NCBI GenBank assembly: GCA_004764695.1
Contig: SMSO01000037.1
Coordinates: 2,890,747-2,954,746, forward strand
Direction: 5' to 3'
DNA length: 64,000 bases
Source: Schizochytrium sp. TIO01
Lineage: Eukaryota > Protista > Bigyra: Labyrinthulomycetes
In this document: one piece after another, positions 3 through 30,570 of the stretch
Numbering within the stretch: the stretch's first letter is position 1
Layout: every line of letters starts with the position of its first letter
Position numbers and translations under genes: made by a program
Notes under the pieces: model-generated
Databases searched by the model: none
The model's input: only the letters and a program-made list of their open reading frames with translations
Told to the model about the DNA's origin: nothing

Positions 3-2180
3 TCAAATGATGCTCAGAGTGTGTCAAGCGGACATTCGTCTCCAGCACTTCTAACTCGTGCTACTCTCGTGAAGAAGACTATTGCTCAGCTGGAGAACTA
101 CAGCAAAGAAAAGGCACATGACATTTACACGCGCTTTTTTGACAAGTCAAACACAACAATGTGGCACCCCGGTGGTAGGAAGCGACGTTGGCAAAAGGAC
201 GATCTGATTAGAGCGCTTTTGCTTGAAGATGAGGCTGAGGCTGAGTCTGAGTCAGAAGATGATCATAGTGAGAACGCTATCAACAGTGTGGGCAATAAGG
301 CCAACACTTTGAAATCTAAGCACACAGCTGAGCAGACCTCTTTTGAACCGGTGCTGTCTCATACAGAGCCAGCACCCATACTACCAGAACCTATTCCATC
401 CTCCATACCAGCAACGGACGTATCAAATCTATCTGAAGATGGTTCAAGCACAGGAAAAAGCATTCCTCCTGAACTCGAAGAGGGGAGGAAGGAAACGTCA
501 AAGAAGGTAAGCAACCATGACGGCAAGGCGGGAAAGGGCCCGTCTCGTCGAAAGACAAGATCTAGCAAGAAGCCAGACACTTCAAGAAACAAAGTCCAAG
601 CTTCTTCAAAAGGTGTGTCAACTCCAGTACGCGCTTTGAAGCGAGTTCCAGTTCAGTCTCCTGTTAAAGAAAATGCAAAACGTATCACTGGCAAAACTCA
701 CCCCGGCAATTCGTCGAAACAACCTTCGAAGACACCCAAGCCAGCACCATCTTCAGGTGTAAGTCTCCTCACAACCCCTCCTACAACGCCGCAGCTTACC
801 CCAGAAAACAATGACTTGGAAGAAGAACCCCATCCAATTCAACCTAAGAACTTGTCATTTTCAAAGAATAACAAAGCGCAGAAAGAACTCAAGGAGCAGA
901 GTACTCCACAAGGACCAATTCAGGAACCCCAACAACAACAGCAGCAACAACAGCAGCAACAGCAGCAACGGCCCCAACAACAACAACAACAACAAACAGC
1001 TAAAACTCCTATATCCTCAACACTTCCTGACACACAAAAAAGGACAATAGCGTCTACAAATGAACAAGAAGACATTACAAACAACAGTGATTCTGCTCTA
1101 AGTAGCAGTCTTCGCTCAGGCGGTACCTACCAGCAAAGGCAAGAAAAGCAATACGATATTGTGAACTCGCAAGAGTCTACACCGTCGCATGTCATGAGCA
1201 TGCTTAAAGAACATTTCAAGACACAAGAGATATTTATGAATCGCTGCCAGGAACAATTCAAGTCAAATGATACTCAGCTTCACAGACTCGCAGACCAAGT
1301 AAAGGAAAGCAAGCTCCAAGCAACCCGGGCTCTCGAGCAACAATCTGAACTTCGCTCTACCTTTGCAAAGGAGTTGTCTTCTCAAATTCGGCAAGCATTG
1401 ACAAATCAGCGGCGAGTATCTCTACAGGATCAAGAAGAGTCTGATGATGAAAGTGCTGGTAAAGAGCTTAACGCGACGAACCCTGCGCAGGCTATTGACG
1501 AGCACGCAAATCAAGAACATGGGAATCCTGAAGCTATTACTTCGCCTCAGTGCCAGGATGGAGATGTCTTACATCCGCAAACCAATGAAGTTTTGAATGA
1601 ACAATCGAAACATTCGAGTGTATCTACCGCTGTTGATGCTAAACATACCCTCCAAGAGTTTGACCCAAGTATTTACGAGCGTCTCTCTCTAGCAAATGAA
1701 GTACTTTGTCGCGCCAAGCAGCAAGCACAGGCTGATATCGAAGCTGCTCAGCACCGGTTTGCTCTAGAGAGAATGAGCATTGCCCGAACTGCAAGTCGCC
1801 GTGTAGCTCGCCAGCGTCGTGCGCAACGTCGCAGTCTTCAAAAACGAGTTCGCGCAGAGCAAGCAACGCTTGATAAAATCCACAAGCTAGTATCGGCTAG
1901 GGCTCAAAGCCTTACGGAGCTTCAGGCTCAGCGGGAACATTGTATCCAAACCGTTCGGGTCAAGCTCGATGCCGCAAGCTCGATCCTTTCTGTCCAAGAA
2001 GAAGCTGTGCAGAAACACAAGGCACAAGAAAAATATCAAAATCCTAAGTGGGAATCCCTTATCAAGCAATTTGAGCAATACGCAAAGGATCAACTAGGAG
2101 TAATGCGAAAGCGAAAGTCGTTAGTGAACTCCCAACACACAAAGCTTAAGCGTCTTGTTCAAAGCTTTCAGGTAGTTTGA
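3..2180 (+). CDS. Hypothetical low-complexity/coiled-coil protein with polyQ, probably 5'-truncated by the window edge
   Basis: The frame is open from position 3, and the track start at 21 is a GTG. The N-terminus has a short helical segment (TIAQLENYSKE...WQKDDLIRALL) loosely like SAP/HeH motifs. The middle is S/P/T/K-rich with polyQ at ~929-977, and the C-terminus is coiled-coil-like. Confidence 0.75.
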   Translation, partial: SNDAQSVSSGHSSPALLTRATLVKKTIAQLENYSKEKAHDIYTRFFDKSNTTMWHPGGRKRRWQKDDLIRALLLEDEAEAESESEDDHSENAINSVGNKANTLKSKHTAEQTSFEPVLSHTEPAPILPEPIPSSIPATDVSNLSEDGSSTGKSIPPELEEGRKETSKKVSNHDGKAGKGPSRRKTRSSKKPDTSRNKVQASSKGVSTPVRALKRVPVQSPVKENAKRITGKTHPGNSSKQPSKTPKPAPSSGVSLLTTPPTTPQLTPENNDLEEEPHPIQPKNLSFSKNNKAQKELKEQSTPQGPIQEPQQQQQQQQQQQQQRPQQQQQQQTAKTPISSTLPDTQKRTIASTNEQEDITNNSDSALSSSLRSGGTYQQRQEKQYDIVNSQESTPSHVMSMLKEHFKTQEIFMNRCQEQFKSNDTQLHRLADQVKESKLQATRALEQQSELRSTFAKELSSQIRQALTNQRRVSLQDQEESDDESAGKELNATNPAQAIDEHANQEHGNPEAITSPQCQDGDVLHPQTNEVLNEQSKHSSVSTAVDAKHTLQEFDPSIYERLSLANEVLCRAKQQAQADIEAAQHRFALERMSIARTASRRVARQRRAQRRSLQKRVRAEQATLDKIHKLVSARAQSLTELQAQREHCIQTVRVKLDAASSILSVQEEAVQKHKAQEKYQNPKWESLIKQFEQYAKDQLGVMRKRKSLVNSQHTKLKRLVQSFQVV

Positions 2181-15318: not shown

Positions 15319-18300
15319 TTAAGATGGCTTGCAATTCCTGCAACGCCGCTGTCGAGGCTCGAAGGGTAGACCACAATCAGGACAAACCCGGACATTAGCT
15401 GCATTTTTCTTCCAGCCCTTGGGTCCTGAACTTCGTGACCGCTTTGAAGAGCCACCGCTCTTCCCTCGAGATCGTTTCTGCCCGCGGCCGCGACTGCCAC
15501 TGCCGCTACCGCTTCCGTCTCCCCAACCTTGTTGTGGGCAATTATTTGCAAAATGGCCTATACCCCCGCACTTGTAACAGCTTTGCGTAGAAGTGCTGTT
15601 ATCACTTCCACCCCCATGACCACCACCACTAAAACTATGATTGCTGCTGCTTCTTTCAGGGCAATTACTTGAAAAGTGACCAGGCTTATTGCAACTGAAA
15701 CACACGTTACCAGAGCCACTTGCTGATGAGGATGACGAGAATCCGCCCCCTCCACCACCCGACGAATTATTAAATCCACGAGAAGATGAATTTTGAGGGC
15801 AGTTGTTTGCGAAATGACCGGGCTGGTTACAGATATAACAGATACCTCCAGATGATGTTGCTGATGCCGAGCCTAATGCTGCAGTTGAGTTTGAGGAGGA
15901 CCCATAAGTGTTGTTGTTTTGGTTCTGCGGGCAATTACTCGCGAAATGGCCTGGTTGATTGCATTTGTAGCAAGTTCCTGACGTTCCTCCGAGAGATGAG
16001 GAGGCAACGGGCTGCCCGGGCGTGTATTCGTCAGCCCAAGCCTGGAATCCACAACCACCAGGTCGAGCACATACAAAAAACTCCCGGCCCTTGTTTCCAT
16101 TATCACGAGAAACTGTGCGCTTTGCGCATGGCTCTTGGTGTGCTTTGCATAAAGGTACAGATGAATCAGCTGTACTGCTAGCCATATTATTTCCTCGGCT
16201 GCTACCTTGGTGAAGCCCAGCATTTAAACTTGACGGTTGGGAAGAACCTCCGGGGCGGCCAGTTTGAGCTTCATCAGCCCATTGGAAAAAGTTACAGGCC
16301 TGATCCTTATCCAAAGAACATTTAAAGAACTTGCGACCAGTATTTGGACCTTCTTTACGAACAGTGAGCTCGACAGTTGGTACATTATGCTCGCAAAGTG
16401 GTCTCTCAGAGCCAAATGAACTACTTTGAGATGTTTGTTGCATAGAACCAACTGGTGGACCAGACAAGTCAACCTCCATGCCACTTAAAGGAGGGTCTGC
16501 TTGTACACGTCGTGTATTGTTCGCAGGTATTGCGACTTTTGGATTAGAAAATTGAGTTTTGTGTGGAGGTGGGCTTACCGATGAATTTCTAACAGACATG
16601 CTGCCGCCGCCATTATCTCCATAGCCATCCATCAAAACATCATGATCAGTACTCCGATCTTTGCAATTCGCAGACGGGCAAATGTAGACAGGGTTTTCAA
16701 CGCCCGGAGGAAGGGCGCGAGGTTTAAACTCAGCGCGAATCTTGCAAATACCACAGCTAGGGCATTTGCTACGCCCTTTCCGAGGGACACTTGCCCGAAC
16801 AATTGTACGTGGAAGATTCACACGGCCCTTGCAGCCTTTGTTTTTGCATCGAAGCAGGAATACGGTGGGCTTACCATCCATTCCAGGATATTTAACAAGG
16901 TGTAAAGGCGCATCCCTGCAAATAGGGCATGGCATAACATTGACCTCTCCGCCATCAACCCCTCCAGAAAGCTCACATCGGTCCTCCCGGCAATCACGGC
17001 ATGTCATTTTAGGACGGATAAGCACGTCTTCAATATCCGTAGACTTGGGGGGACATTGGTAACAACGCGGACAAACATTGAAACTCCACTCTCCTGGTTT
17101 AGCGCTTACAACTTGTGACTTGCATAGATAACATGAATGTTCTAGTGGGGTGATTTGCCCACGTGGCAGCTCAAACACCTCCGTACATGATGAACATATG
17201 AGAGCACTCAAAATCATTTTTGTTTTCCCTCCTCGTGGTCCAGGTTTACCATCAACAGACTGTGTGTAAAGATCCATACTTTGATGACCACATTTGCCAC
17301 ATCGGGAGAATCCTCGCTTCTTCAGGTTGTATTGTTGCTGAATGCTTTCAAGCTTCCGCGCATTGCTTCGTCCAAGATGGCGCTGCAAACTCCCTTCACC
17401 AGCACCCCCGGGGCCGCCACCTCCAGGAGGCTGATTGTTATTGTTATTATTATTATTGCCTTCATTTTCATCATCTCCATCTTGTCTCTCAAGGTTTGCA
17501 GCAAAATTATCATATCCTTCAAGATACTCGGCCACAGCTTGATGTAACAAGTTAATGCGCGCCAAAGTTGCTTGAAAAACAGCCCTGAAACGCGCAATAA
17601 GCCCCTGAATAACAACATCCTTTGTCAAACGACCTTGGCAAATCTCTTTCAGCTGATGTTCCATTTGAGCGCGTAGTGCAGGTCCAGAAATTTCTTTCTC
17701 ATGCCCAATACGCTTGTAAGCCTGAACAAGGGCATAACCAAGAGGCTCTGGGCGAAATCTTTTCACAGAATTACCAACCTTGGTGGCATATTCCCGATCT
17801 TGAACAGTCTTAATGTGGTCTTGGATCGTTGCATCAGTTCCAATTCCATGTTTGTCCATTAATCGAATCAGATCAGGCTCAGATAAAAGTTCAGGGGGAC
17901 TTGTACGCCCTTTGTACATTTCGAGCACACTAGGTACAAAGGTTTGCCCCTCTTCGAATCTTGGCAAAGTTCGTTGAGTCCATCGCTCGTAAATATACAC
18001 CTCCAGATAGTTGAATTCAAGCACCTCCAAGCCTGTTGTGATGAAAGTCTCCCCCCCCATGCTTACGACCACAGTACTTTTGCTACCACGCGCATCATGA
18101 CTACAGCACGCCAGAAAGTGGCGAACGACAAACTCATAGACGATTCGCTCTGGACCTTGCAGCTCCTCAAGAGGAACACAAGCAGTTGGGTGGATTGGTG
18201 GATGTGCTTGATCATTGTTACGTCCTTGACGAGGCATTTGGAATCCCCCCTGGTCTAGCAGTCCTGCGGCATAGTTTCCCCACTCATTGTGATTACGTTG

Positions 18301-19365
18301 AATATTGACCAACTCTTGAAGGTTGAAGCTTGGGTCGAAGCTATCTGTCTCTGTACGCGGATAACTAATTAGACCCCGTTGGTACAAAGCTTCTGCAACG
18401 TGCATAGTGGTCTCTGAGGCTAACCCACGCGATCGTGACAATCGAATTTGCATTTCTACCGTGGACAAAGGAACAGGCCTCCACTTTGACGTTGGGCGTT
18501 GCTGAACACGTTCAACTTGTGCTTCGCCAGCCTCAACGCATAGCTCGTAGAGAACCAGGGCGGTCAAGTGATCATATAGTTGGCCGCGGCTCCAAAAAAA
18601 ATCACAGGCTGCTTCGGCACTAGCTTGATAGGCCATCTTAATCGTCCAAAAGTCTTCTGGTATAAATAAGCGAATTTCTTCAGCTCGCTCCACAATAAAA
18701 CCCAAAGTGGGAAACTGACACGGCCCAAAGCTGATGAGACGTTGCTGTAAACCCATATTGTCGCGCAGGTCAAGAGTTTGAAATCGTGTAAATGCAGATC
18801 CAATTCGAAGGTCAATCTCAGTTCGTGTCTCTACTGCATCAACTTCGCGTTGGTTCAGTTCACGAAGGTTACGTAGCGCTTGCCAAAGATTTGCCTCATT
18901 CGCTACAGAAAATTGCGCACGTTTTACAATAATGTTGGGCGCCCTTTCTCGACATGTCTGCGCAATCTCTGCGCCAATAGCTTCGCCCTCTCGGTCACAA
19001 TCTGTCCAGATAATAAGTACCTTTGCGGTCCTAGCTTCACGCTGCAAAGTTCGGGCAATGTTCTGGCCTTGTGAACCAACTTTGCGTACAACTGGTGCCT
19101 CAAAAAGAACACTTGGAGCGCAGCTACTCCAACTTCGGAATTGGTCTTGAAAATCAAGTTCCATAAGGTGTCCAGAAACCGATGTGACAACCATATTAAA
19201 TTCCTGTTCTTGAAACGCTCCTGGAATAGCAAAGCGGCATTTGAACTCAAAGCACCGATTATATTTCGAGTACCCATCGCGAGATCCAAAGTTATTCTTT
19301 GAAAGAACTTCAGCCACACGTTTCGCAATAGAGGGTTTCTCTGCCACATTCAGGATGGCCACCAT
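15319..19365 (-). CDS. TOP3A: DNA topoisomerase III alpha (type IA) with C4 zinc ribbons, two GRF fingers and four CCHC knuckles
   Basis: TOPRIM motifs LNVAEKPSIAK and IWTDCDREGE. Also SFGPCQFPTLGF, catalytic GLISYPRTET, DQAHPPIHP and GIGTDAT. GRF motifs NTGRKFFKC and NKGREFFVC. Four CX2CX4HX4C. First ATG at 19365. Confidence 0.96.
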   Translation of the reverse strand: MVAILNVAEKPSIAKRVAEVLSKNNFGSRDGYSKYNRCFEFKCRFAIPGAFQEQEFNMVVTSVSGHLMELDFQDQFRSWSSCAPSVLFEAPVVRKVGSQGQNIARTLQREARTAKVLIIWTDCDREGEAIGAEIAQTCRERAPNIIVKRAQFSVANEANLWQALRNLRELNQREVDAVETRTEIDLRIGSAFTRFQTLDLRDNMGLQQRLISFGPCQFPTLGFIVERAEEIRLFIPEDFWTIKMAYQASAEAACDFFWSRGQLYDHLTALVLYELCVEAGEAQVERVQQRPTSKWRPVPLSTVEMQIRLSRSRGLASETTMHVAEALYQRGLISYPRTETDSFDPSFNLQELVNIQRNHNEWGNYAAGLLDQGGFQMPRQGRNNDQAHPPIHPTACVPLEELQGPERIVYEFVVRHFLACCSHDARGSKSTVVVSMGGETFITTGLEVLEFNYLEVYIYERWTQRTLPRFEEGQTFVPSVLEMYKGRTSPPELLSEPDLIRLMDKHGIGTDATIQDHIKTVQDREYATKVGNSVKRFRPEPLGYALVQAYKRIGHEKEISGPALRAQMEHQLKEICQGRLTKDVVIQGLIARFRAVFQATLARINLLHQAVAEYLEGYDNFAANLERQDGDDENEGNNNNNNNNQPPGGGGPGGAGEGSLQRHLGRSNARKLESIQQQYNLKKRGFSRCGKCGHQSMDLYTQSVDGKPGPRGGKTKMILSALICSSCTEVFELPRGQITPLEHSCYLCKSQVVSAKPGEWSFNVCPRCYQCPPKSTDIEDVLIRPKMTCRDCREDRCELSGGVDGGEVNVMPCPICRDAPLHLVKYPGMDGKPTVFLLRCKNKGCKGRVNLPRTIVRASVPRKGRSKCPSCGICKIRAEFKPRALPPGVENPVYICPSANCKDRSTDHDVLMDGYGDNGGGSMSVRNSSVSPPPHKTQFSNPKVAIPANNTRRVQADPPLSGMEVDLSGPPVGSMQQTSQSSSFGSERPLCEHNVPTVELTVRKEGPNTGRKFFKCSLDKDQACNFFQWADEAQTGRPGGSSQPSSLNAGLHQGSSRGNNMASSTADSSVPLCKAHQEPCAKRTVSRDNGNKGREFFVCARPGGCGFQAWADEYTPGQPVASSSLGGTSGTCYKCNQPGHFASNCPQNQNNNTYGSSSNSTAALGSASATSSGGICYICNQPGHFANNCPQNSSSRGFNNSSGGGGGGFSSSSSASGSGNVCFSCNKPGHFSSNCPERSSSNHSFSGGGHGGGSDNSTSTQSCYKCGGIGHFANNCPQQGWGDGSGSGSGSRGRGQKRSRGKSGGSSKRSRSSGPKGWKKNAANVRVCPDCGLPFEPRQRRCRNCKPS

Positions 19366-20787
19366 CTGCAGACAATATTCTAGAGCCTGCACGATGGCGT
19401 ATAATACTCCAGGAAGTCCACCAAGTTTTAGGTAGGCAGAGCCAGACGGTCTTCGTACGTTACGTCCTCCAAGAAAAGATTCCCTAGGCAGTAAATGTGC
19501 GTCTTTGCGTCCCTGAGTGAGTTTGAGCAAAGCGTTCTCAAGAGCCTGTAACTAAAAATGAGAACCAATTTTTTAAAACACCCGCTTGCCTCAACTTAGC
19601 CTCCAGCAACACCTTATCGCCGCAAGAGTTTCCCTTACGCTTCTCTACAGAGGCACCTGGAGATATATGCGAAGATGCGTGCGTGCTTACGGAGGCTGTC
19701 TTTTGTAGCTGGTCGACGTTCTTCAAAGAAAGATGAGCACAATCCGGGCTTAACTAGCTCTTCTGCTCCCAACGATCGCGAACTGCTTTCCGAGTCCGAG
19801 CTTCAAAGCAGCAGCTGCCTCTGCCACCACCTTGGCTTGTGGCAGCTCTTGCACGGGTGCTCCCCTAGCAGCCCAGAGCTTTCGCTGTGCCGGTGGGTTT
19901 GCGTTCTGCTGTTGTTTGTGATCGCTCTCATTTGCTCGGTAGTTGAACAAACGAAGAGTTTAGTCTCATTTTGACTTAGCAGTATTAGTATTGTTAATGA
20001 TAGGAAGCGGCTAGTACATTTTGGGGCTCACGGCATGTGATGATAGAGCACCAGGAGTTTTACAAACTGTTGCCTGGGATTGATTGGGTTGTTTTTCCTG
20101 CTGGTGCATCAATATGTGCATTGGTTTGGTGGAGTGTCTATTTAGATTGCAGATTGCTGAAGTTGATCATGATGTAAAGTTGCTTCGCTTTCACGAGTGT
20201 AGCGGTGTGGGGTTTGTCAGGGAACCTAGGGATGATCAACGTAGCACTAAGACCACCCTTTGGAAAAAAGGGGTTTAAACAAAATGGAAGTGCAGGAATT
20301 CAAGTCAAGCTCTTGGGGCGAAAGGCGTTAGCACTGATGGACTTAGGAGATGACATAATATGGGAATCAGCGACGAAGCTCGACAGTTTACAACGAGCTC
20401 AACGAGGAAGCGAGAGAGCTTATACGTGTACATAGCAGCATTCATCAAGTTAAACGTATATGTCACCTGATAGATGTACTGCTTGTTAGGAGGCAATAAT
20501 GAGGGCATTCCAGGTTTTGGCATGTCAACAAAGACATGCCAGAGCCTCTGGCAAGTTGATAAGGATATAAAGGGAGCTACATAATGTCGATGTAAATGAA
20601 GTTGCTCAAAGAATCTATTGTTGATGCAAAAGCTGGTGCGAAACACACAAAAACAAATGAGTAGGTTATGAACAAGGAATCTAATACAAAGGAGCCCTCG
20701 GAGGAGCAAAGATGGAATCTTGCCCTTGCAGACAAGCAAACATGTGAATAAGTTTTTTTTTTTTTTGTAACTTGCGAGTCAATTGGT

Positions 20788-23700
20788 TTAGACAAAATCA
20801 ATATCCTCGGGACGGAAGTTTGGATCATCCTCATCCTCTTCAGTATTGGTAAACACGGAACGCGTCTGGCGGCGCCGTGTGAACAGGGTTCCAGAAAATG
20901 TCGAAGGGCGACGGTTTCTTGGGCCACTGCTTGCAATGCTACGTTGCATGCCGCTGTCACTGCGCTGAAGGGTGCTGTCACTTCGGTATGCGTTGGCGTT
21001 GTTTGTTCTCGCGGCGGCAATTGACCTCGGTTGCTGAAATGTCAGGTCCGTACCAGCGGTCTCGTAGCCGTCCTCATAGTCCTCATACTCGTCATCATAC
21101 TCGGTGCCATAGTCTGCTGTAGTCACAGTGTCTCGTTTGAAACGTGTAAAAAAGCCTGTTAGTCCTGATTTGCTTGTGCTTGCCGAGTAAGCGGAGCCAC
21201 GATGGCGTCTCGGTTTTGGCACAGCGGGACGAGACGCCCCAGATTTCTGGTCAAAATCATGCTCGGCCGCTTGTGGGGCCCTGCGAGCTGTGGCAGTGGC
21301 AGTGGCAAGAACATTTCGTTGACTCTCGCTTTGTGGTAGAGGCTGGGCAAAATTCTGCCCTCCCATATTCTCAAGCTCAAGCGACCGAGTTGACACGCGG
21401 CTGTCCCAAGAGAAATGTGTACCACGGCGACTAGCCACAAGTGGGATTTTCTTCCGCTTGTGACGCGGAAACAATGCAAAAGCAATGAAGAATAGAGTGA
21501 TGAATTCAAGAGCAGCCCCCAGACCAAAAGAAATCATCCCGTTGAGCGTCCAGATACCTGGCGAAGAAATCATTTTCGTTCCCAAAGCGATTACATAAGA
21601 GCAGCCAACCAAAAGAGCTAAGACCACAACAAAAAAGAGCAATCTTGCAGGGTTATACCATTTTGCACGGATATGGTATCGCTCCTCCATTCGACTCAGT
21701 GCACGCTCGTTACGCATGAGAGAGTAAGAAACATTTGCTTTCCCACCATAAATACGATAAAGTCCATCGTTAAGTACTCGGAAGAACCATACGGAATTCA
21801 TGATACCTTGGAAGAGTCGGAAGTACTTGGAGTGTTTAACATGGTCGTGCATGGACTTGAAGTACTTCAACTGTCCACGTTTGATAAATACCTGCATCTG
21901 GCGCTTGCACAGTTGTTCAAGTTCTGGATTTGCGGTACGTTGCACTGCGTTATTCTCCAAATCAATATTAGCTTGATCATTTTGCTCTTGCTGCTGGCGT
22001 TGAACTTGTCGAGGGTTACGCCAAGCGACTTCGTTAGGGTTTCTCCGAGCCGGTTTTTTTGCTTTCTTTGACTCTGGCTTCTGATAATGATGCCAAGGAG
22101 AATTTGTGATAGCAATTGCTTGTGCTTGCAAATGAGGCACACGTCGAAGAACATGTCGTTCATTTTGTGAAAGAGAGTAAAGTGAAAGGCGGTAGAGGAG
22201 CATGACAAAGGTCACTGTGATTGCACCAACAGTGAAACCAGCTACTGACATCTGCAATGTGTTGGTTTCGGTTATCAAATACGAAACATAGACACTTGCG
22301 AATGCAGCAAGCAAACCCATCGGGATACCAAAGCTCCTTGAGATGCGTGATAATTCGGAATTATAGTATATGATACCAACAATCGAGTGCGCACGTAATA
22401 CATCTCTCAGAAGCTCAATGAATGACTTCGTTGCGCTGCGAGGTTTGGCCTTATACGTCCGAAGTTTTTCAAAAGCATCACGTTGCATAAATTTCAGGCT
22501 TTCTTTTTCTTTCTTAAAGTGGCGCATTGCTAGGAAGGCAAGAACAGCGCCTTTTTGAACTCTAGCCGAATCCTTGACATCTGCGCGATACAATACAAAA
22601 GTAATTGCAAGCCAACTACCAAGTGTTCCGGCGATAATCTTAGCTATCAGTTTACCATCATATCCCACACTGGTGGTGTAGCGTGACACAAAAAAACCCG
22701 CAAACTGGCTCCGATCACTGATACCTACACATTCGCAGGTCATAGACGCTCCATCTATCGTGATATCCGAGGTTATGTTAATGAGACGACAGTTAGAGCT
22801 TGACCATGCATTGATGGTTGAGTTCCACATACCACATGCAATCCCCGACGCGTCAGACGAATTGTAGCCATCGGGGTAAAGGATTTCCAAGGTAACGTTC
22901 ACAGATTGCTCAGATGCAGCAAAAACTACAGAGCTGTGAATTAGCTCAAGGGATATCACATCTGTGACAACATTTTGGCTCACAACAACACTATCGTCAG
23001 CACTGTCATAGTCAAAAGATTCGACAAATTTGCTATCAAGACGGCGGCGCATACGTGTGAGGTCATCTAGGTCACGCGCAACGACCTTGAGGTTGTCTGA
23101 GCAGACACCGGATGGCGGAGCTCGGAATACTGCTGTCACGATCTCATCGTATATCGGTGATGGGCCTGGGTCAAACAGATCAGAAGATATATCAATGAAG
23201 GTAGAATCATCTGCTGGCTGAAAGCGGCCTGCAACTTCGTTAGAATAGACCTTCTTTGATGTAGACTGTAATGACGTTAACGAAACACTAAACGTCCCTT
23301 GATCAGCAAGCCTAGGTGCAAACACAGTTTCGACAATATTGCTGTGAAGCTCTGCGACAGAAAAGTTTGAGGAACATAGCTGAGAAAGCTCTGTCAGTTC
23401 TGCCAAAATTTCTGCCGCGATACCCATAGCTCCTTCGGGAACAATAAAGGCAATATTGGGCTCAATATTTGATTCTGAGGCTTCTTCAGCCTCGCGGACA
23501 ATATAATTGCGCCAGAGGAGTAAAGAGGTCTGGAACATTTCTGCGACACGGGCAGCCAAAGAAGCATCATCATCGTCGAGGCTAAGAGCAAGCTCATTAA
23601 GTACGAGCATGATAAGTTCGCCAAGTTGCGTTGAAAACTCGCGTTCATGGAGAAGGGCAAGAATTTCTTCCATGGCGGACGCAATGCTGTTCTTCAGCGC

Positions 23701-26667
23701 ACGAGTTTCGCTATCTGAAACGCTGACTAGAGCGCGTGTGACGACAGAAGTAAAGGCAAGTTGGTTGCGTAAACTTCCCGCTGGGTCTTCTGTGTCCACT
23801 TCAGTTTCTACATCGACATCATCCAGAGTCTCAGGTACAGAGAGCCGGATATATGTGGGTGTTGATGCCTTGGATTCTGCACCATATTGATCACGCGCGT
23901 ATGCTACAATTGAGGTGTATGAGACTTGGTCGGTCTCTTGAGTAAATGGTAGGACAATGTTAGCAAGAACAGAAGAAGAGCTCCATTCCGCGATTGACAC
24001 CGGTTCAGCATCAATTGTATTTCGTTCCAAAGCAAACTTGTACTCGTAGTTGTCCTCACTATCAGTAGCATCTGCAAGCACAGCTGTAAAGTTAAACCTT
24101 GTTACTCCAGCTGTACCTTGAGATCGCGAAACTGTCATTGTGGGGGCATCTGGGAAGCCGTAGACACGAAACCCAATTTCAGATTTTGAGCTGGTCATAT
24201 TTTCTTGCGCGACAGTTAGCTCATAGCGAAAGTTGACCTTGCCAGATGATGATGCAGGTACGGTGTAGGGTTTTATGGCGAGATTTGGTGAGGTCGAGGA
24301 TGTAGCGTATACTTTGGCTAAGATGAGTTTTTCTGCCGCAGAAAACGTACAAGAGGATCGATTCACCAAAGCTCCAACCTCTTCCTCGAGATCATCAGTA
24401 AAGTGTCCAGCAGTGCGAACCCAGCAATAGTGCAATGGGAGGTCTGACCTGGCTTGTTTTACTTTTGTAGACAAGACGATACCTTCATGAGAGTAGGTAA
24501 CTTCATTGACGTTGGTGATGGCCACCTTCACTGTTGATACACTTCCTGTTGTCGGTGTCGCCGTTGTGGGACTTGATGTAGGTCTTTGAGTTGGTGCTTC
24601 TGTGGTAGGGTTAAAGGTTGGCGCCAGTGTAGTAGGTTCAGGAGTGAGGCTGGTTGTGCCATTTGAAGGTGTTGATGTAGATGGGGGCATTGTTGTTGGC
24701 ACCTTTGTCGGACTGCGAGTAGGAATTTTGGTTGGAATACGAGTGGGTGCTTGAGTTGGCACAGAAAGTAGAACTTCGGTCCCACAGATGTCAGCCCAAG
24801 GCCTGGTCAATGATGGGACACGAGCGTCAGTAAGGTTCGGGTTTTGAATAATGTACGCTTGGGCTTTCGCGCCTTCATCAGAATGCTCCAAGTTATGGCA
24901 GTGTAGAGCAATTCGGCCAAGGAAAGTATCAGGCTCGAATCGGAATCGAATCGCCATATCTCCACGGGGACGGATAGTATCAACCCAATCTCCTCGCTTG
25001 TGGAAGCCTGTTTCATCAGAAATATCATCAAGAAGTTGATAGTGGTTAACATGGATGTGGAGTGGATGATTCAAGCTGGTAGCTGTCAGATCCCATTCTT
25101 GAACTTCACCTAATAACATAATAGACGCGTTTCGCTGACCAGGGTTGCCTGCTGCATTTGCTTCGTCAGCTGTGATCCAGTCCTTCGCAAACTCTTCGTT
25201 ATTGATTGACCATGGGTTGATAAATATAGTCCAGGAGCGATTCTCGGGGGCCTCCCAACGCTCAAGAAAATCTGGGCGAGCAAGCGTTGTTGACAATTCC
25301 TCAACTTGGGCTTGCGTAAAGCCAGAAAACTGGTTTGGACTCCGCTCAAGCAGGTCCGCTAGATAAAAGGGTAAACATGGGACATATGTGAATTCATCTG
25401 GGAGCTCTGATGTTTGTGAAGCCGCAACAACATTTAATGTCATCAGAAACTCTCGCTGATACACTGGATCAACTCGGCTTTCGTCCACAAGGCCATCTTC
25501 ATCAAAAGCATCGAAGTTGTCATACACGAGGGCTTTCGTTCCAATCGAGCCTGTGCAACGAATCAAAACGTCACAACGATTTGCAGGGTGGAGATGGATT
25601 GAGTGGTTGGCGGCAAAGTTAAGGTCACGAGGCCCACCCTTTAAGTATACACCATCGCGGCTGATAACGCGCACCTGACACTGAGCCGGTTCGGATTCAG
25701 ACTGATTGTAAATTGCCATTTTAAGGTCCCGGACTGCGGCAACATGAGCCATGCGCCAGCGATACCATACGCCTTGTTCAAGCTCCAAACGTGGCTTATA
25801 AAGTCCATTGATCAAGAAAAATCCATCGGATTTGTAATCTGCAAAGCCCTCCTCGGGGTCATCGTAGCCAACACTGCTAAGGTTAACACTGAAGGTGGTA
25901 TCCTTTAGATTAATTCGATGTGAGAAAGGGTCATTCTCCACTCCATCAGATAGGTCCAGGAGCCGAGGTGGGTCCATGTGTTGTATAAAGATGATTTGCT
26001 CAGGAGTATTCATAAGCTCTATGGGAATTTCTGAGCCATCATCTGCATCCTCGATAATGATCATGCCTGCTGCGCCTGCCCCGGTGAAGGAAACAGCAAG
26101 CGGGTGCATGTGCGGATGATACCAATGCGTACCACCAGCATGGTCAGTAGGCAACGTGTAATTATAAAGGTGCATTTCCCCGGGCTTGACTTTGATAGCG
26201 ACGTCATCTTCAGCGCCAGATACGTGTAAACCATGCGTATGGATGTTTGAAGTATGGTTTCCTGGACTAGGCGGGTCAAGGTCATTCATAAATTGCACAG
26301 TTACCTTTGCGCCTTTGTCCATACGTATTACAGGCCCTGGGACGGAACGTGCCCCGCCATTGGCTCCATAGCCCTTGCCATTCATGGTGAAGGACCCTTC
26401 ATGTGATATGATTCGGCTGTCACCTACCGTGGACTCCACTAAGTAAGGGAGGGAAAGCTCAATGGATCCAAATGAAAGGTTCATAGCATCTCCATCATGG
26501 AGCACGATTTCTTCAATAGGGCAGTCAGTCAAGAGAATACCTTCGTCATTGGAGTTGCAGGTAGTCGCGCTATGCACAAATCTTGCGCTTGCCAAGATCG
26601 CTAGCACTGCCACACCTAATACAACACTGGTTCTTGTCGCTGGTCTTGCCCTTTTCTTCTTTTGCAT
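20788..26667 (-). CDS. Multicopper oxidase - Thr/Pro stalk - REJ - GAIN/GPS - multi-TM polycystin-1-like fusion protein
   Basis: Signal peptide after the ATG at 26667 (alternative ATG at 26742). Four Cu motifs: HTHG, WYHPH, HPLHIH, HCHNLEH. PT-rich repeats, REJ-like GVTRFNF...YEYKF...ARDQYGA, GPS-like CGMW...WSSSNC...TCEC...FAGF, and about 5 hydrophobic helices. One uninterrupted ORF. Confidence 0.85.
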   Translation of the reverse strand: MQKKKRARPATRTSVVLGVAVLAILASARFVHSATTCNSNDEGILLTDCPIEEIVLHDGDAMNLSFGSIELSLPYLVESTVGDSRIISHEGSFTMNGKGYGANGGARSVPGPVIRMDKGAKVTVQFMNDLDPPSPGNHTSNIHTHGLHVSGAEDDVAIKVKPGEMHLYNYTLPTDHAGGTHWYHPHMHPLAVSFTGAGAAGMIIIEDADDGSEIPIELMNTPEQIIFIQHMDPPRLLDLSDGVENDPFSHRINLKDTTFSVNLSSVGYDDPEEGFADYKSDGFFLINGLYKPRLELEQGVWYRWRMAHVAAVRDLKMAIYNQSESEPAQCQVRVISRDGVYLKGGPRDLNFAANHSIHLHPANRCDVLIRCTGSIGTKALVYDNFDAFDEDGLVDESRVDPVYQREFLMTLNVVAASQTSELPDEFTYVPCLPFYLADLLERSPNQFSGFTQAQVEELSTTLARPDFLERWEAPENRSWTIFINPWSINNEEFAKDWITADEANAAGNPGQRNASIMLLGEVQEWDLTATSLNHPLHIHVNHYQLLDDISDETGFHKRGDWVDTIRPRGDMAIRFRFEPDTFLGRIALHCHNLEHSDEGAKAQAYIIQNPNLTDARVPSLTRPWADICGTEVLLSVPTQAPTRIPTKIPTRSPTKVPTTMPPSTSTPSNGTTSLTPEPTTLAPTFNPTTEAPTQRPTSSPTTATPTTGSVSTVKVAITNVNEVTYSHEGIVLSTKVKQARSDLPLHYCWVRTAGHFTDDLEEEVGALVNRSSCTFSAAEKLILAKVYATSSTSPNLAIKPYTVPASSSGKVNFRYELTVAQENMTSSKSEIGFRVYGFPDAPTMTVSRSQGTAGVTRFNFTAVLADATDSEDNYEYKFALERNTIDAEPVSIAEWSSSSVLANIVLPFTQETDQVSYTSIVAYARDQYGAESKASTPTYIRLSVPETLDDVDVETEVDTEDPAGSLRNQLAFTSVVTRALVSVSDSETRALKNSIASAMEEILALLHEREFSTQLGELIMLVLNELALSLDDDDASLAARVAEMFQTSLLLWRNYIVREAEEASESNIEPNIAFIVPEGAMGIAAEILAELTELSQLCSSNFSVAELHSNIVETVFAPRLADQGTFSVSLTSLQSTSKKVYSNEVAGRFQPADDSTFIDISSDLFDPGPSPIYDEIVTAVFRAPPSGVCSDNLKVVARDLDDLTRMRRRLDSKFVESFDYDSADDSVVVSQNVVTDVISLELIHSSVVFAASEQSVNVTLEILYPDGYNSSDASGIACGMWNSTINAWSSSNCRLINITSDITIDGASMTCECVGISDRSQFAGFFVSRYTTSVGYDGKLIAKIIAGTLGSWLAITFVLYRADVKDSARVQKGAVLAFLAMRHFKKEKESLKFMQRDAFEKLRTYKAKPRSATKSFIELLRDVLRAHSIVGIIYYNSELSRISRSFGIPMGLLAAFASVYVSYLITETNTLQMSVAGFTVGAITVTFVMLLYRLSLYSLSQNERHVLRRVPHLQAQAIAITNSPWHHYQKPESKKAKKPARRNPNEVAWRNPRQVQRQQQEQNDQANIDLENNAVQRTANPELEQLCKRQMQVFIKRGQLKYFKSMHDHVKHSKYFRLFQGIMNSVWFFRVLNDGLYRIYGGKANVSYSLMRNERALSRMEERYHIRAKWYNPARLLFFVVVLALLVGCSYVIALGTKMISSPGIWTLNGMISFGLGAALEFITLFFIAFALFPRHKRKKIPLVASRRGTHFSWDSRVSTRSLELENMGGQNFAQPLPQSESQRNVLATATATARRAPQAAEHDFDQKSGASRPAVPKPRRHRGSAYSASTSKSGLTGFFTRFKRDTVTTADYGTEYDDEYEDYEDGYETAGTDLTFQQPRSIAAARTNNANAYRSDSTLQRSDSGMQRSIASSGPRNRRPSTFSGTLFTRRRQTRSVFTNTEEDEDDPNFRPEDIDFV

Positions 26668-29070
26668 TACATTTCTCGTTGCGTCTCGTCCATCTTCCTT
26701 TCCTGTGCACGTGCTTGCGCCTTTCAATGTCCTCACAACCATCTCGAACTTCTGTACTCGTCTGTGAGTGATTAAGGTCTGCTTCAAGTTTATACAGCAC
26801 GTATGCAGCCTGACAGCTACACGCGCGACTCCAGCCCACCCAAGGCCAAAGCTTTTTAACTCCAGGAAACTGGCTCACGGTAGGCACTCCACACACGTCC
26901 ACTTAGCTCCTGTTTATATACTTTCGCACACGTCTTCTGCCGCCACAGATGCTTTGCCTCGTTGTTCCCCTCGTTTGAGGGCGTTTACTTTCTGCAGTTG
27001 CGAGTCTGTGCGTCTTCTACCCTGAAGGCCTCCACGATGAACAGACTTCTCTCCTCGACGCTCCGTTCACAGCCTTTACTTCGGCTTTTGATTTCGCTGT
27101 CACTCTTTCGGCCGCTATCGATAGTGCTGGAACACGTGAAAACTCGCTAACTGAGTAGATGAAACTGGAAAATCAATTATCCCGTTGGTCTGTCCCTGCG
27201 CAAGAACTGCGGAAAATCAGACGAGGCTTTGTTTTGTCCTTGTACTGCAGTCGGTTTGTCTTTCAGGACTGCATGTAAGCGCTAATGGCAAATACAATGC
27301 TTTTGTCTTCAGTTGTTATTTTCTCTTTTTTGCAAACTTGTACGTCGTTTACCTCAGAAACAAGCGTCGAGCACGTGCCAATCCAGCACCGCTGCGTCTC
27401 CTGCGCTCTCTCTCGCTTTGTGCTTTTGCTCAAGTGATGCGAGCCTGAGCATGTACAAGGGGTTGAGGTGGTCTTGACACACGACGTGCAGCTATTGATC
27501 TTAGTGCTGTCCTCGGCAGGAGTTTTGGTTTGCGCTTTTAGTCTTACTTAGGTGGAGAGGGATCTCAATTGAATGTAGAACACTGTTGTCCCAAAACTTG
27601 GGACATGGACTTTTACATCGGTAGGTCTCCGCGCCAGGTATTCCTTATATGCCCTCTAAACAGAGGGGAAGAGACTTATTCAAAGGGCAGAGTGTGCACG
27701 AAATAGGGGCTTCGTAAGGAGTCAAGATGGGGACACTCGTAGTCCATCGACGACGCGCAAGGGACTCCATATTGCTACCAGGCAGGAGTCCATTTCCTGT
27801 GGAGACGATGAAGGAAGGAGGAGGATCCTCGGCATTAAGTAAGGCCTGGGTAGAAGTAGTGCTTAGCTCGCTGTTATGGAGTACCACTGGCTAGATTAAA
27901 AAAGGCGCAACTTTTTTGTGGCGAATGCAGTACTACCTAGGGACTGCTTCTTGCTAGATTCTTTGGTTCAACCTGGAGGTTCACGCCCTCGGCCTTGGAT
28001 GGCAATGTTTCGGGCTCAGGCTCGGGAATGCCACCGCGTCGACCAACTGTAACGAGTGTGTGCGAATGGCTTGAAGCACTTGACTGAAAACGAGACTCAC
28101 CGTGCGACCCACCCCATCCTACATACTAATGGTAGGTAGGTGCATTGCCAAGGCTGTCGTCATGGTCTGGTGCATTTTGGAATAGCGTGACTAAGAGTGA
28201 GCATTGAGTTTGGCATAGCTCTGGAGCTGGACTTGTTTTGCGGTAACAGATATCAAAGCATTCTCTGTACGTAATGGGGCAAATACTGTAGGGAGGAGCA
28301 CGCAGGGACATGGGAAGGCTATGGGAGGCTGTCCTGTGTAGATTGCTTTTTGTGTTGTCTTCGGCTGTGTTATTGCAATGGAGGTTTGGTTGATTAACCT
28401 GGGGGTTGCTGTAATAGTTGTACGTTCCACCTTCAATGGAAATTGATTGTTACATGTTGGCCAAGTTAGAAATGTTTCTTCGTCAGCAAATTTCGTCTTC
28501 ATAGTATTTGAAAAATAAAATAAAAATAAAAACACTGAAGGATGCAGGTACCCCATGTAAGATTATAAGATCTGAAAGTTATTTTATCTTTTAATCGCGA
28601 ATGTTTACAAATATTCCAGGCGCAGATTAAAACAGGGGCTTATCAATTGCAATCAAGTAAACTGTTCTTATGTAAGTGTAGTGTTCACCGTCAGATGAGC
28701 AAGACCAAGGATATCTTGCTCCTTTGCTAGTAAGCTTTAAGTTGTGTTCTAAGATATAAGAGGGACATACTTCTAAATGAACGGAAAACATTGAACAGAC
28801 CGCAAGTTGGTTTACAGAAAAGAGAGAATGAAAACAAAGAAAAAATCAAACCATTTAACACTCCAGTGATGAAAACTAACCAAGGCGTACTAATTTAGAG
28901 GAATATAAACTGCCGAGTCTCAATAGAGTCCAAAATACAGTTGGCTGATGATAAGAAATTGTGAACAACACCTTCTTGGAAAATTGCCTTTTCTAATTTC
29001 TTCCGGCATTATTACCTTCTGTGTATTCAAGAAGATGTTCTTTCCAAGTGCGCAGAGACTGAGCTTCTAA

Positions 29071-30570
29071 TTATTCCGTAAAACCGCCACAAATTGCAGT
29101 TTCCGAACTGTGGCCAGACTTTGAGATCGCCTTTGCAGCATTGTAAAGGGCTTCTCGATAGCGTTCTGCAGGTTTTGTTTTGTCATATCTACTCTCTGTG
29201 GGTGACTCTGCAAGATTATATATGCCATGTTTAGCAGTCGCGAGCCATTTATACTCCTTACAGCGAGCAGTGAGGCGGGCGTGGGCATCTTCAATAATAA
29301 TAGGTTGATTTTCACGAACGTTTTGGGATGCTGCGGTGTCAATGTCTTCTAAAACAGACCATAAACTAAAGCTATCAGGCCCAGCAGTATCTGGGATACT
29401 TGTGCCTGTCATTGCTGCGAATGTAGCGAGCAAGTCAAGTTGACTGACAGGCTCATCCCATGTAGAGTTCGGTTTGATTTGATCTGGCCAGTGCATCACG
29501 AAAGGAACGCGATGGCCACCTTCGTAGAGCGTGCGCTTCTGGCCTCGGTAAATGTATGTGGTGTCAAATCCAGTTTTTTCGAACTTGCCTGCACCTTCAG
29601 TTCCGTTGTCGCTGGTGAAGACGATCAAGGTGCTGTTGTAAATACCAAGATTCTTGAGGGTTGTCATGATCTCTCCAAGACGATAGTCAATCTCTTCGAG
29701 ATAGTCAGTATATGCACCATATGTAGTACGGCCCACGAAGTCAGGGTGAGGGGTGTGAGGCAAATGGGGCGCTGTGACGGCAAGGTACAGAAAAAACTTC
29801 TGAGATGGATAGTTTGCCACGTGGTTCTCAATCATGTTGATGGCTTCCTTTGTCATGTTGCTCAGACAGTAGTGAGCACGATAGGAGGGTGCGACCGTGA
29901 TCGACCCATGCTTTTCAGAATACGGGAATTTGAGATTATAAGTACGGCAAGTTTTGTCTTCACTCGGGCAGGACTGAATGGCATCGCTAGAATGCTTCGC
30001 TTTTGCAGTATGCATATTAGGTGCTTCCGTAAATGTCCTGTTACGAATATATGACAGATATCCGTAGTTCATGGACGCTGGAATACCGAAAAACTCCTCA
30101 AAACCCGCATCCACGGGTCCTCCAGTGATGTTGCCATTCTCTAAGTCACTTGGCATGTCCATACCAAGATGCCACTTCCCAGACATAAGTGTGCGGTATC
30201 CAGCGTCTTTGAAAAGGTTAGCCAATGTGTAGTGGCCTGGGATCATCGGGGTTGCAGCAGCACCAATAGCACCACCGTTGGGGCGTTGGCGAAAGGAGTA
30301 TGTACCAGTTAGCAACGCAAATCGAGCAGGCGTGCAGACTGCTGCACCAGAGTGACCGTCGCTAAACTCAATACCATTCGCCGAAAGGGTTTCAAGGTTT
30401 GGCGTGCTGACGAGAGTAGGGTTATATTTTTGACGATCGCCGTATCCCTGGTCATCCGTATAGAAGATGATGACATTTGGGTTGGCTCCGAGTGACTCCT
30501 GGGCTCCTAGACACATGCCAATCAGCGCAAGCACTGCGTAAGCCAACGAAGAACCATGAAAAGACCGCAT
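29071..30570 (-). CDS. Secreted formylglycine-dependent sulfatase (family S1, arylsulfatase A-like)
   Basis: Signal peptide. Motifs PNVIIFYTDDQGYGD, CTPARFALLTG, GKWHLG, PHLPH, FTSDNG, YEGGHRVPF. Confidence 0.95.
   Translation of the reverse strand: MRSFHGSSLAYAVLALIGMCLGAQESLGANPNVIIFYTDDQGYGDRQKYNPTLVSTPNLETLSANGIEFSDGHSGAAVCTPARFALLTGTYSFRQRPNGGAIGAAATPMIPGHYTLANLFKDAGYRTLMSGKWHLGMDMPSDLENGNITGGPVDAGFEEFFGIPASMNYGYLSYIRNRTFTEAPNMHTAKAKHSSDAIQSCPSEDKTCRTYNLKFPYSEKHGSITVAPSYRAHYCLSNMTKEAINMIENHVANYPSQKFFLYLAVTAPHLPHTPHPDFVGRTTYGAYTDYLEEIDYRLGEIMTTLKNLGIYNSTLIVFTSDNGTEGAGKFEKTGFDTTYIYRGQKRTLYEGGHRVPFVMHWPDQIKPNSTWDEPVSQLDLLATFAAMTGTSIPDTAGPDSFSLWSVLEDIDTAASQNVRENQPIIIEDAHARLTARCKEYKWLATAKHGIYNLAESPTESRYDKTKPAERYREALYNAAKAISKSGHSSETAICGGFTE

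Follow-up and report, generated by a model that had tools for sequence, protein, structure and literature searches.

A gene of Schizochytrium sp. TIO01 encoding a multicopper oxidase joined to a predicted polycystin-1-type REJ-GAIN-five-helix membrane chassis

Gene and genomic context

The gene described here is located on the minus strand of a window of 64,000 nucleotides, the whole stretch of DNA that was analysed, taken from contig SMSO01000037.1 of Schizochytrium sp. TIO01. The stop-to-stop open frame extends from 20788 to 26787 (1,999 codons). The ATG at 26667 is the first Met preceding a segment that resembles a signal peptide, and the resulting product is identical to P0001 of the public protein collection. 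A preliminary description, made from the sequence alone, had read the locus as one uninterrupted open reading frame, which is borne out by the open frame, the lack of introns and the identity with P0001. The features of the gene are summarized in Table 1.

The coding sequence is flanked by topoisomerase III downstream and a sulfatase upstream; these neighbours offer no functional hint. Differences between strains within the frame comprise 10 synonymous and 19 non-synonymous changes, the latter mainly in the stalk and the tail, and are too few for an inference of selection.

Table 1. Features of the coding sequence, with positions in the window
Feature	Residues (aa)	Nucleotides	Strand	Basis or remarks
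Whole CDS	1-1959	20788..26667	-	ATG 26667, stop 20788-20790; 1959 aa; intronless
Signal peptide	1-33	26569..26667	-	Hydropathy peak aa 9-35; cleavage site read by eye
Three-domain multicopper oxidase (MCO)	37-628	24784..26559	-	Pfam and PDB phmmer
Copper motif HTHG		26241-26230	-
Copper motif WYHPH		26124-26110	-
Copper motif HPLHIH		25068-25051	-
Copper motif HCHNLEH		24903-24883	-
Thr/Pro/Ser mucin-like stalk	634-712	24532..24768	-	Composition
Two FN3/Ig-like beta-sandwiches	~709/713-945	23833..24531	-	AF2 model; C-terminal part of REJ module
GAIN domain	962-1331	22675..23784	-	AF2 model; Foldseek and VIA-align
GAIN subdomain A	962-1116			Helical
GAIN subdomain B	1125-1331			Beta
GPS motif	1278-1331	22675-22836	-	Cys/Trp string aa 1278-1322
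Five-TM module with conserved cytosolic loop	1338-1735	21463..22656	-	Hydropathy, positive-inside rule, AF2
TM segments 1 to 5	1340-59, 1446-66, 1471-96, ~1674-97, 1710-35
Cytosolic tail	1736-1959	20791..21462	-	224 aa, Arg/Ser/Thr-rich, mostly disordered

Transcriptome-like contigs from four runs of four studies, which were guessed to be RNA and do not prove a single transcript, cover the range from 20713 or 20753 to 25299 as a single contig with no joints or indels inside the frame. They begin 35-150 nt past the stop, cross the stalk and enter MCO domain 3, and the intergenic region 19900-20700 is nearly devoid of contig cover. A fraction of 0.90-1.00 of the words sampled from the stretch is present in the runs; judging by the length of the contigs and the words they share, the N-terminal part of the oxidase (beyond 25299) is probably covered too. 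Contigs reach 850 nt or more upstream of the ATG. A split into two genes was looked for; starting at the 3' end, the contigs were found to continue unsplit across the stalk as far as MCO domain 3. The locus is one gene, transcribed and intronless. That two adjacent genes or an assembly chimera were mistaken for a single frame is extremely improbable: the low-complexity stalk would be a plausible joint for a misassembly and no positive evidence of one was found, whereas the frame is open throughout its 1,999 codons, the stalk is bridged by contigs from all four studies, and the order of parts across the junction is the same in seven homologues from independent sources despite variation in stalk length.

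The predicted topology, based on hydropathy and the positive-inside rule, is that of a multi-pass membrane glycoprotein with extracellular N-terminus and cytosolic C-terminus. The signal peptide, already noted in the preliminary description, lies with its hydropathy peak N-terminal to the oxidase and consists of a basic n-region, the hydrophobic core VVLGVAVLAILA and the end ...VHS/AT.

The multicopper oxidase

The distal ectodomain can be classified from its sequence as a three-domain MCO of the CueO/CotA type. Pfam matches above the cut-off were obtained for Cu-oxidase_3 (aa 107-208, 3.6e-14, 53.3 bits, cut-off 21) and Cu-oxidase_2 (aa 504-603, 6.6e-9, 36.1 bits, cut-off 20.4). The middle Cu-oxidase domain gives a weak Pfam match (0.11, 13 bits) and can be aligned with the second domain of the Thermus MCO, with which all three cupredoxin domains are colinear. 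Three cupredoxin domains with four copper motifs had been proposed for this region, and both the domain assignment and the motif coordinates agree with the present data.

The eleven ligands of the T1, T2 and T3 copper sites (H143, H145, H184, H186, H534, H537, H539, H589, C590, H591 and H595) are invariant in the alignment of seven family members, and the motif classes HxH, HxH, HxxHxH and HCHxxxH are complete when aligned to the Thermus MCO. The T1 axial position is occupied by A600, a non-coordinating Ala, opposite the axial Met of the Thermus MCO and CueO. In the PDB comparison by phmmer the best matches are the Thermus MCO and CueO (3e-20, every copper motif aligned); fungal laccases reach only ~1e-6, as against 1e-20 for CueO/CotA-like enzymes, and no Fet3 entry is present among the PDB matches listed. 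An acidic insert of ~100 residues precedes domain 3, and a Met-rich Cu(I) segment was not found in the MCO.

Two MCO loci were found in the genome, the chimeric frame and a soluble protein of 684 aa. As the membrane-bound one of the two, the chimeric protein is the obvious candidate for metal oxidation at the cell surface, and hence for the handling of iron or copper by thraustochytrids, some of which are used in industry to produce oil. It is possible, if on the unlikely side, that the protein is a ferroxidase of the Fet3 type, oxidizing Fe(II) to Fe(III) for the FTR1 permease of the genome, with the membrane chassis substituting for the single TM helix of Fet3. Such a role would suit the sole membrane-anchored MCO found in the genome, in which FTR1 matches were found in one 431-aa ORF only. 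The acidic insert and the missing Met-rich segment point the same way, as do CueO, Thermus MCO and McoC, the closest relatives of solved structure, which we take to be metallo-oxidases, and the machine name FET3 carried by the orthologue from Hondaea. That database name is automatic, however, FTR1 lies on a different contig, and the grouping with CueO/CotA-like enzymes (E 1e-20), with no Fet3 among the matches listed, argues against a Fet3 affiliation.

Stalk and REJ-like sandwiches

The stalk contains 25 Thr, 17 Pro and 10 Ser per 79 residues, in line with the Thr/Pro stalk reported at first reading, and its length differs among orthologues (alignments A1 and A2). The two beta-sandwiches that follow form a block with pLDDT values mostly between 72 and 93 in the AF2 model and match tandem FN3/Ig structures with Z ~10. 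By hhalign the sandwich region is placed with 98.1% probability onto aa 445-636 of P0007, within the Pfam REJ match of that protein (211-631). Pfam REJ exceeds its cut-off (25) in the homologues P0004 (29.7 bits), P0022 (33.8) and P0024 (33.7), at profile positions ~263-440 only, and the nearest clusters in the ESM Atlas are all REJ (top score 0.93). The 1959-aa protein itself gives no Pfam match to REJ, GPS, PLAT or PKD_channel even at E<=10. Of the REJ-like module claimed for this region the C-terminal part is supported through the homologues and hhalign, but not by a Pfam REJ match of the protein itself. Searched against Pfam in two pieces (E<=10), the 1270 C-terminal residues gave chance matches to MFS and prion profiles only.

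GAIN domain and GPS motif

Foldseek top matches of the ectodomain model are GAIN domains (4dlo, 2.3e-9). With VIA-align, 255-280 residues align to six solved GAIN domains (GPR110, BAI3, BAI2, latrophilin-1, latrophilin-3 and CELSR1) at Z 14.3-16.7, unrelated matches having Z <=11. These structural matches, and those of the five-TM module given below, were obtained with AF2 models for which the input alignments were shallow (18-19 sequences; pLDDT 80 for the ectodomain model and 73 for the five-TM model). What had been described as a helical GAIN-like region is therefore recognized as GAIN by comparison of the predicted model with solved structures.

The GPS scaffold (C1278, W1288, C1293, C1311, C1313 and F1322) is invariant in the family alignment, and the profile of GPS plus TM region of the family matches the GPS of ADGRF1 at 3e-5. 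In the HMM alignment the position of the cleavage triad is occupied by G1315-I1316-S1317, without His. The GPS-like Cys/Trp motif of the preliminary description is accordingly retained as far as the scaffold is concerned; a Pfam GPS match and the H-L-(T/S) triad are both absent. The GPS His is missing in all seven colinear MCO-fused members, three of which have also lost the Ser/Thr nucleophile, whereas the triad H-(A/M)-(S/T) is kept in 17 of 18 aligned oxidase-free relatives, and P0015, which diverges most, has retained the His, at a site with gaps. Certain GAIN domains with non-consensus sites do cleave. Given the loss of the His in every colinear MCO-fused member, self-cleavage is predicted to be probably lost in the oxidase-bearing clade, and the oxidase would stay covalently tethered rather than being shed. 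The confinement of this loss to the enzyme-bearing clade offers a natural experiment on the purpose of GAIN cleavage.

Membrane module and cytosolic parts

The five hydrophobic segments correspond to the multiple TM helices of the preliminary description, and the disorder it assigned to the tail is matched by pLDDT values below 50 over the last part of the model, ~aa 1735-1770. The five-TM model aligns to polycystin-1 (PC1) residues 3070-3610, which hold TM1-TM5 (8z6b_A), with Z 15.1, rmsd 3.1 Å and 18% identity over 181 residues; the runner-up in the exhaustive VIA-align search has Z 8.5. The TM model had no Foldseek match in the PDB below E 0.07, and single-sequence phmmer of GPS plus TM region against the PDB gave none. 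By hhalign, REJ/GPS proteins are matched with 99.5% probability across GPS and TM1-3. The polycystin-1-like chassis that had been suspected is upheld, for its TM part, by the structural search. Together, the models support a chassis of the polycystin-1 type below the stalk, consisting of two FN3-like REJ domains, GAIN, a five-TM bundle and a tail.

No PLAT domain was detected by Pfam after TM1, where the TM1-TM2 loop of 86 residues is helical in the model. Channel-like TM6-TM11 are absent (five TM segments only, no PKD_channel match in Pfam), and so is a class B2 seven-TM domain, with no 7tm match in Pfam and no structural match to a GPCR. In the cytosolic loop W1627, R1638 and Y1640-G-G, and in the tail SWDSxxSTRS (1753-1762, alignment A2), are conserved down to 30% identity. 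The tail ends in an acidic C-terminus (...DIDFV).

Homologues and oxidase-free relatives

The family was assembled by exhaustive phmmer and profile search. At least seven proteins carry MCO and chassis in colinear order (P0001-P0006 and P0017), including one from Hondaea fermentalgiana named "FET3". Further MCO-REJ proteins are P0022 and three that are shorter or have diverged further, P0023, P0024 and P0021; a search for other MCO+REJ proteins had been suggested in the preliminary description.

The family profile matches eight non-MCO REJ+GPS proteins in hhalign with 100% probability (E 2.5e-39; controls 0.1-0.9%). With the chassis as query, no paralogue was obtained at E<=0.01 from six-frame translations of the own genome, the first-look filter having given a false negative; Pfam REJ and GPS searches of the same genome revealed two paralogues, one of them strongly matched by the family HMM. 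On the L007 ORF of this genome the HMM match covers positions 83-993 (E 5e-36). Other oxidase-free carriers of the chassis are P0007, P0008, P0010 and KAH9252232 of Batrachochytrium. The match reaches TM4-5 in the L007 ORF and in P0008, and GPS and TM1-3 in most others including KAH9252232. The N-terminal regions of these relatives differ, P0008 for example having an LNR domain. Judged by these profile matches, the chassis without oxidase occurs elsewhere in the own genome and in other eukaryotes.

Proposed function

The overall picture is best explained by an active MCO tethered on a polycystin-1-type REJ-GAIN-five-TM chassis and encoded by a single gene, which we regard as the probable reading. 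The oxidase of the ectodomain would be catalytically competent and act outside the cell, reducing O2 to water with electrons from a phenolic substrate or a low-valent metal ion. With a non-cleaving GAIN domain it would remain permanently at the surface, and the five-TM module, the cytosolic loop and the tail motifs would serve placement and partner binding, possibly also signalling.

A stronger version, in which substrate turnover, metal binding or mechanical load at the oxidase is relayed via REJ and GAIN to the five TM helices and the cytosolic motifs, would make the protein a sensor and not a mere anchored enzyme. Anchoring needs one TM helix, yet a five-TM module, a cytosolic loop and a tail motif are conserved; the chassis is common to oxidase-free REJ/GPS receptor-like proteins; and 24 PKD_channel loci in the genome are potential partners. 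We nevertheless consider such relay unlikely. The loss of the GPS triad speaks against exposure of a tethered agonist by shedding, loops and tail carry no known signalling domain, and PLAT and TM6-11 are missing, the latter being what PC1 uses to assemble with polycystin-2.

Beyond the tethered oxidase, the REJ-GAIN-five-TM chassis might represent an ancient self-sufficient membrane signalling module that existed on its own before a TRPP-like channel half joined and that gave rise to the front half of PC1, here re-armed with a redox enzyme as its sensing head. This is a distinctly unlikely conjecture; if true, it would describe the first polycystin-type receptor with an oxidase reaction (metal or phenolic availability, O2) as its input, as opposed to adhesion or flow.

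Both halves of the protein belong to well-known families. Literature searches revealed no description of an MCO-polycystin-type fusion, and the preliminary description knew of none. To our knowledge, the ectodomains of PKD1-family and GAIN-domain proteins carry adhesion modules and not enzymes, as did those met in this analysis, and we know of no function assigned to TM1-TM5 of PC1. A bundle resembling TM1-TM5 that stands alone, as five helices, in protists and chytrids would make the module testable in a small, transformable organism.

Comparison with known systems

The PKD1 family (PKD1, PKD1L1-3, PKDREJ and sea-urchin REJ proteins) shares with the chimeric protein the order of REJ (FN3-like), GAIN/GPS and TM helices as well as a long cytosolic TM3-TM4 loop. 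It differs in an ectodomain of LRR, lectin or PKD repeats instead of an enzyme, in the PLAT domain after TM1 and the channel-like TM6-11, both missing here, and in the triad HL*T, which reads G-I-S in the chimeric protein. Members of the family with incomplete REJ domains, and with 1-11 TM segments, have been described (PMC1934368). The REJ of PC1 consists of four FnIII domains (PMC4810088), compared to two FN3-like units here.

The GAIN domains of adhesion GPCRs (BAI3 4dlo, GPR110 8hc0, latrophilin 4dlq) resemble the present one in subdomains A and B, the four GPS Cys, the Trp and a final hydrophobic strand (QFAGFFV here) immediately before TM1. Adhesion GPCRs possess a class B2 seven-TM domain and the catalytic His, whereas the chimeric protein has five TM segments and no His, and identity is 10-15%.

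Fet3 and hephaestin likewise combine an extracellular MCO with a C-terminal membrane anchor in one polypeptide. In yeast Fet3 and in hephaestin a single TM helix follows right after the oxidase, whereas in the chimeric protein ~700 residues of stalk, REJ and GAIN precede five TMs, and its MCO is CueO/CotA-like rather than Fet3-like.

CueO and the MCO of Thermus thermophilus have the three cupredoxin domains and the copper motifs in common with the chimeric oxidase (3e-20). Both enzymes are soluble and periplasmic and have Met in the axial position, and CueO also has a Met-rich helix; in the chimeric MCO the axial residue is Ala, a Met-rich segment is missing and the acidic insert of ~100 residues is present. 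The oxidase-free REJ-GAIN-five-TM proteins of protists and chytrids combine the same chassis with other N-termini and mostly keep the GPS triad.

Gene organization and neighborhood

The preliminary description had the candidate receptor oxidase encoded by one uninterrupted ORF. A 1999-codon stop-to-stop frame was found (see table), in which position 26667 is the first Met before a signal-peptide-like segment, giving a product of 1959 aa (the oxidase protein), and an identical protein, P0001, is already present in a public protein collection. The closest named homologue, from the thraustochytrid Hondaea fermentalgiana, is colinear over its full length with 55-61% identity and carries the machine-given name FET3; its C-terminal REJ-like, GAIN/GPS, five-TM and tail part (the chassis) is unannotated. 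The acidic C-terminus of the oxidase protein ends in D-F-V and resembles a sorting or PDZ-type motif; the database proteins P0002, P0004 and P0017 share this exact ending, and P0006 has a similar one (DFR). The topoisomerase III and sulfatase genes on either side are of eukaryotic type; together with the Hondaea homologue they point to a thraustochytrid-like stramenopile whose genes are poor in introns. The neighboring sulfatase gene has no evident functional link to the oxidase gene.

Features of the window and REJ loci elsewhere in the same genome
Feature	Coordinates	Strand	Remarks
Topoisomerase III-type gene	15319-19530	-	Toprim + Topoisom_bac, 2.5e-103; downstream of oxidase gene; C-terminus with two GRF zinc ribbons and four CCHC zinc knuckles
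Oxidase gene, stop-to-stop frame	20788-26787	-	
Acidic C-terminus of oxidase protein	20791-20850	-	aa 1940-1959, ...EDEDDPNFRPEDIDFV
Sulfatase gene	29071-30570	-	Pfam Sulfatase, 1.4e-47; upstream of oxidase gene, same strand
Second very long open frame	50872-56886	+	2004 aa; no Pfam match at E<=0.1
Large oxidase-free REJ protein	G000:C13:5538563-5545054 (L007:64-6555)		2164 aa; Pfam REJ + GPS; intact H-A-S site
Large oxidase-free REJ protein	G000:C5:863289-869954 (L008:1790-8455)		2222 aa

Transcription and strain differences

Transcript-like contigs occur in four runs, each from a different study; the runs that contain the stretch are recorded just as 'RNA?'. Transcripts splitting the ORF into two genes had been named as a refuting result; instead, one contig begins 35-150 nt past the oxidase stop codon and crosses tail, TM, GAIN, REJ and stalk into the multicopper oxidase (MCO) part without joints or indels (compared up to 25299), extending at least 2216 letters further. 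Intergenic positions 19900-20700 are almost empty of contig cover, and the topoisomerase contig terminates separately from that of the oxidase gene. This cover speaks against two genes, while contigs are no proof of a single mRNA. Strain differences are substitutions only, 10 synonymous and 19 non-synonymous, the latter mostly in stalk and tail.

Upstream of the ATG (26668-27520), the gene-covering contig ends after about 850 nt (about 27515-27521) in two runs, and judged from record lengths it reaches about 28820 and about 30534 in two others. A long 5' UTR could account for this extension, as could an overlapping transcript or transcription running on from the sulfatase gene.

Multicopper oxidase part

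Cu-oxidase_3 and Cu-oxidase_2 score above the Pfam cut-offs, and the three cupredoxin domains and four copper motifs all align to the best solved relatives, Thermus MCO and CueO (E about 3e-20), in agreement with the MCO assignment made at the outset. The eleven ligand residues are invariant across seven homologues that are merely 30-61% identical to the oxidase protein, and all seven share its Ala at the axial T1 position (Ala600). An acidic insert of about 100 residues precedes domain 3. Among stand-alone relatives, identity reaches at most 29% (33% over partial alignments); they comprise protist transcripts and FtsP/CotA-like enzymes of bacteria. Search of the genome turned up just one further MCO locus, whose 684-aa product is soluble and has Met at the axial position.

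Evidence for the REJ/GAIN/GPS chassis

No Pfam family matches the C-terminal 1270 residues of the oxidase protein, and the chassis was therefore examined by four other routes. In an exhaustive phmmer search, aa 705-1760 gave five strong matches (E<=1e-30; four of them new), all with an N-terminal MCO, and ten weaker ones, of which the six scanned are all Pfam REJ+GPS proteins without MCO. Profile search added P0021-P0024, and Pfam REJ scores above cut-off immediately C-terminal to the MCO in the family members P0004, P0022 and P0024. Profile-profile comparison of the family's C-terminal alignment with eight oxidase-free REJ/GPS proteins gave 100% probability (E 2.5e-39, 763 colinear columns), with each third significant separately (REJ 98.1%, GAIN 97.1%, GPS+TM 99.5%) and controls at 0.1% (MCO part) and 0.9% (reversed query). 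By residue mapping, aa 723-946 fall inside the Pfam REJ match and aa 1274-1333 onto the Pfam GPS match of P0007, an oxidase-free REJ/GPS protein. The 2164-aa paralogue shares the whole chassis, TM4-5 included, and the nearest ESM Atlas clusters, all REJ families, agree with this reading.

Structural evidence comes from AF2 models built from shallow alignments. The model of aa 705-1345 (pLDDT 79.7, pTM 0.80) comprises two beta-sandwiches, a helical bundle and a beta domain. GAIN domains are its top Foldseek matches, and VIA-align gave Z 14.3-16.7 over 255-280 residues with six different solved GAIN domains, followed at Z 11 or below by FN3/Ig tandems on the two sandwiches; the REJ module of polycystin-1 (PC1) has been described as FnIII domains (PMC4810088). 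The model of aa 1270-1770 (pLDDT 73.2) had zero matches in Foldseek. In an exhaustive search of 48,161 chains, one match stood apart, the polycystin-1 chain of the PC1/PC2 complex 8z6b, with 181 residues aligned at 18% identity (Z 15.1, rmsd 3.1 A); every other match was at Z 8.5 or below. The polycystin-1 match pairs TM1-TM5 with PC1 residues 3070-3610, which we take to be TM1-TM5 of PC1, immediately after the GPS.

GPS cleavage site

The GPS regions of 25 sequences, 7 oxidase-bearing and 18 oxidase-free, were aligned by HMM. All but one of the latter (17 of 18), the own-genome paralogue among them, read C-x-C-x-H-(A/M)-(S/T)-D-(Y/F); in P0015, the most divergent, the His is kept and the site gapped. 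Their H-(A/M)-(S/T) is the counterpart of HL*T, the self-cutting tripeptide of PC1 and adhesion GPCRs (PMC4810088). The His is missing in all seven oxidase-bearing members, which read G-I-S (the oxidase protein), P-I-T, E-I-S, G-V-P, N-V-L and, in two near-identical sequences, R-V-P; three of the seven also lack the hydroxyl nucleophile. The GPS disulfide cysteines and Trp are invariant in the oxidase-bearing family, which appears to have kept the GAIN fold and lost self-cleavage, so that the oxidase would be held covalently.

Predicted topology and function

The topology predicted from the signal peptide, the positive-inside rule and the five TM segments places oxidase, stalk, REJ and GAIN outside, with the tail and loops 1 and 3 on the inner side. 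The protein would be a permanently tethered cell-surface oxidase acting on a low-valent metal or a phenolic compound. The metal is somewhat more likely, because the nearest solved relatives, CueO and Thermus MCO, are metal oxidases, because this is the sole membrane-bound MCO found in the genome, and because the genome has an FTR1 gene, albeit unlinked (FTR1 matches are confined to a single ORF). Since the chassis is more elaborate than anchoring requires and its cytosolic motifs are conserved among homologues, a partner-binding or signalling role is plausible. The genome also holds 24 PKD_channel (polycystin-2-like) matches.

Related fusions and comparison with known systems

The preliminary description knew of no MCO-polycystin fusion, and full-text literature searches that combined the enzyme (MCO, laccase or ferroxidase) with the chassis or host (REJ, GPS, polycystin or thraustochytrid) turned up no account of one; a thraustochytrid enzyme survey goes no further than counting one 'laccase' unigene per strain. 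P0021 (Hondaea fermentalgiana, 1498 aa) is a second MCO-REJ paralogue ending in a thioredoxin domain instead of GAIN-5TM; neither of the two Cu-oxidase_3 loci detected in the genome of the window is a counterpart of it, and it could be a gene-model fusion. The same MCO clade includes other unusual fusions (database proteins P0071, P0026, P0060 and P0072): a protein of the diatom Attheya carries PKD-type Ig domains, a 2750-aa Prymnesium protein has peroxidase and DOMON domains, and two are MCO-peroxiredoxin fusions.

The oxidase protein lacks a PLAT domain (its TM1-TM2 loop has 86 residues and is helical), channel-like TM6-11 and a 7TM domain, and of REJ it has just the C-terminal part. As the PKD1 family is known to include members with incomplete REJ domains and with 1-11 TM segments (PMC1934368), the oxidase protein belongs at the margin of this family, not outside it. 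Compared with PC1 and adhesion GPCRs, HL*T is replaced by G-I-S; compared with CueO, the Met-rich segment is absent; and compared with Thermus MCO, the copper motifs are the same, but Ala600 stands where that enzyme has its axial Met.
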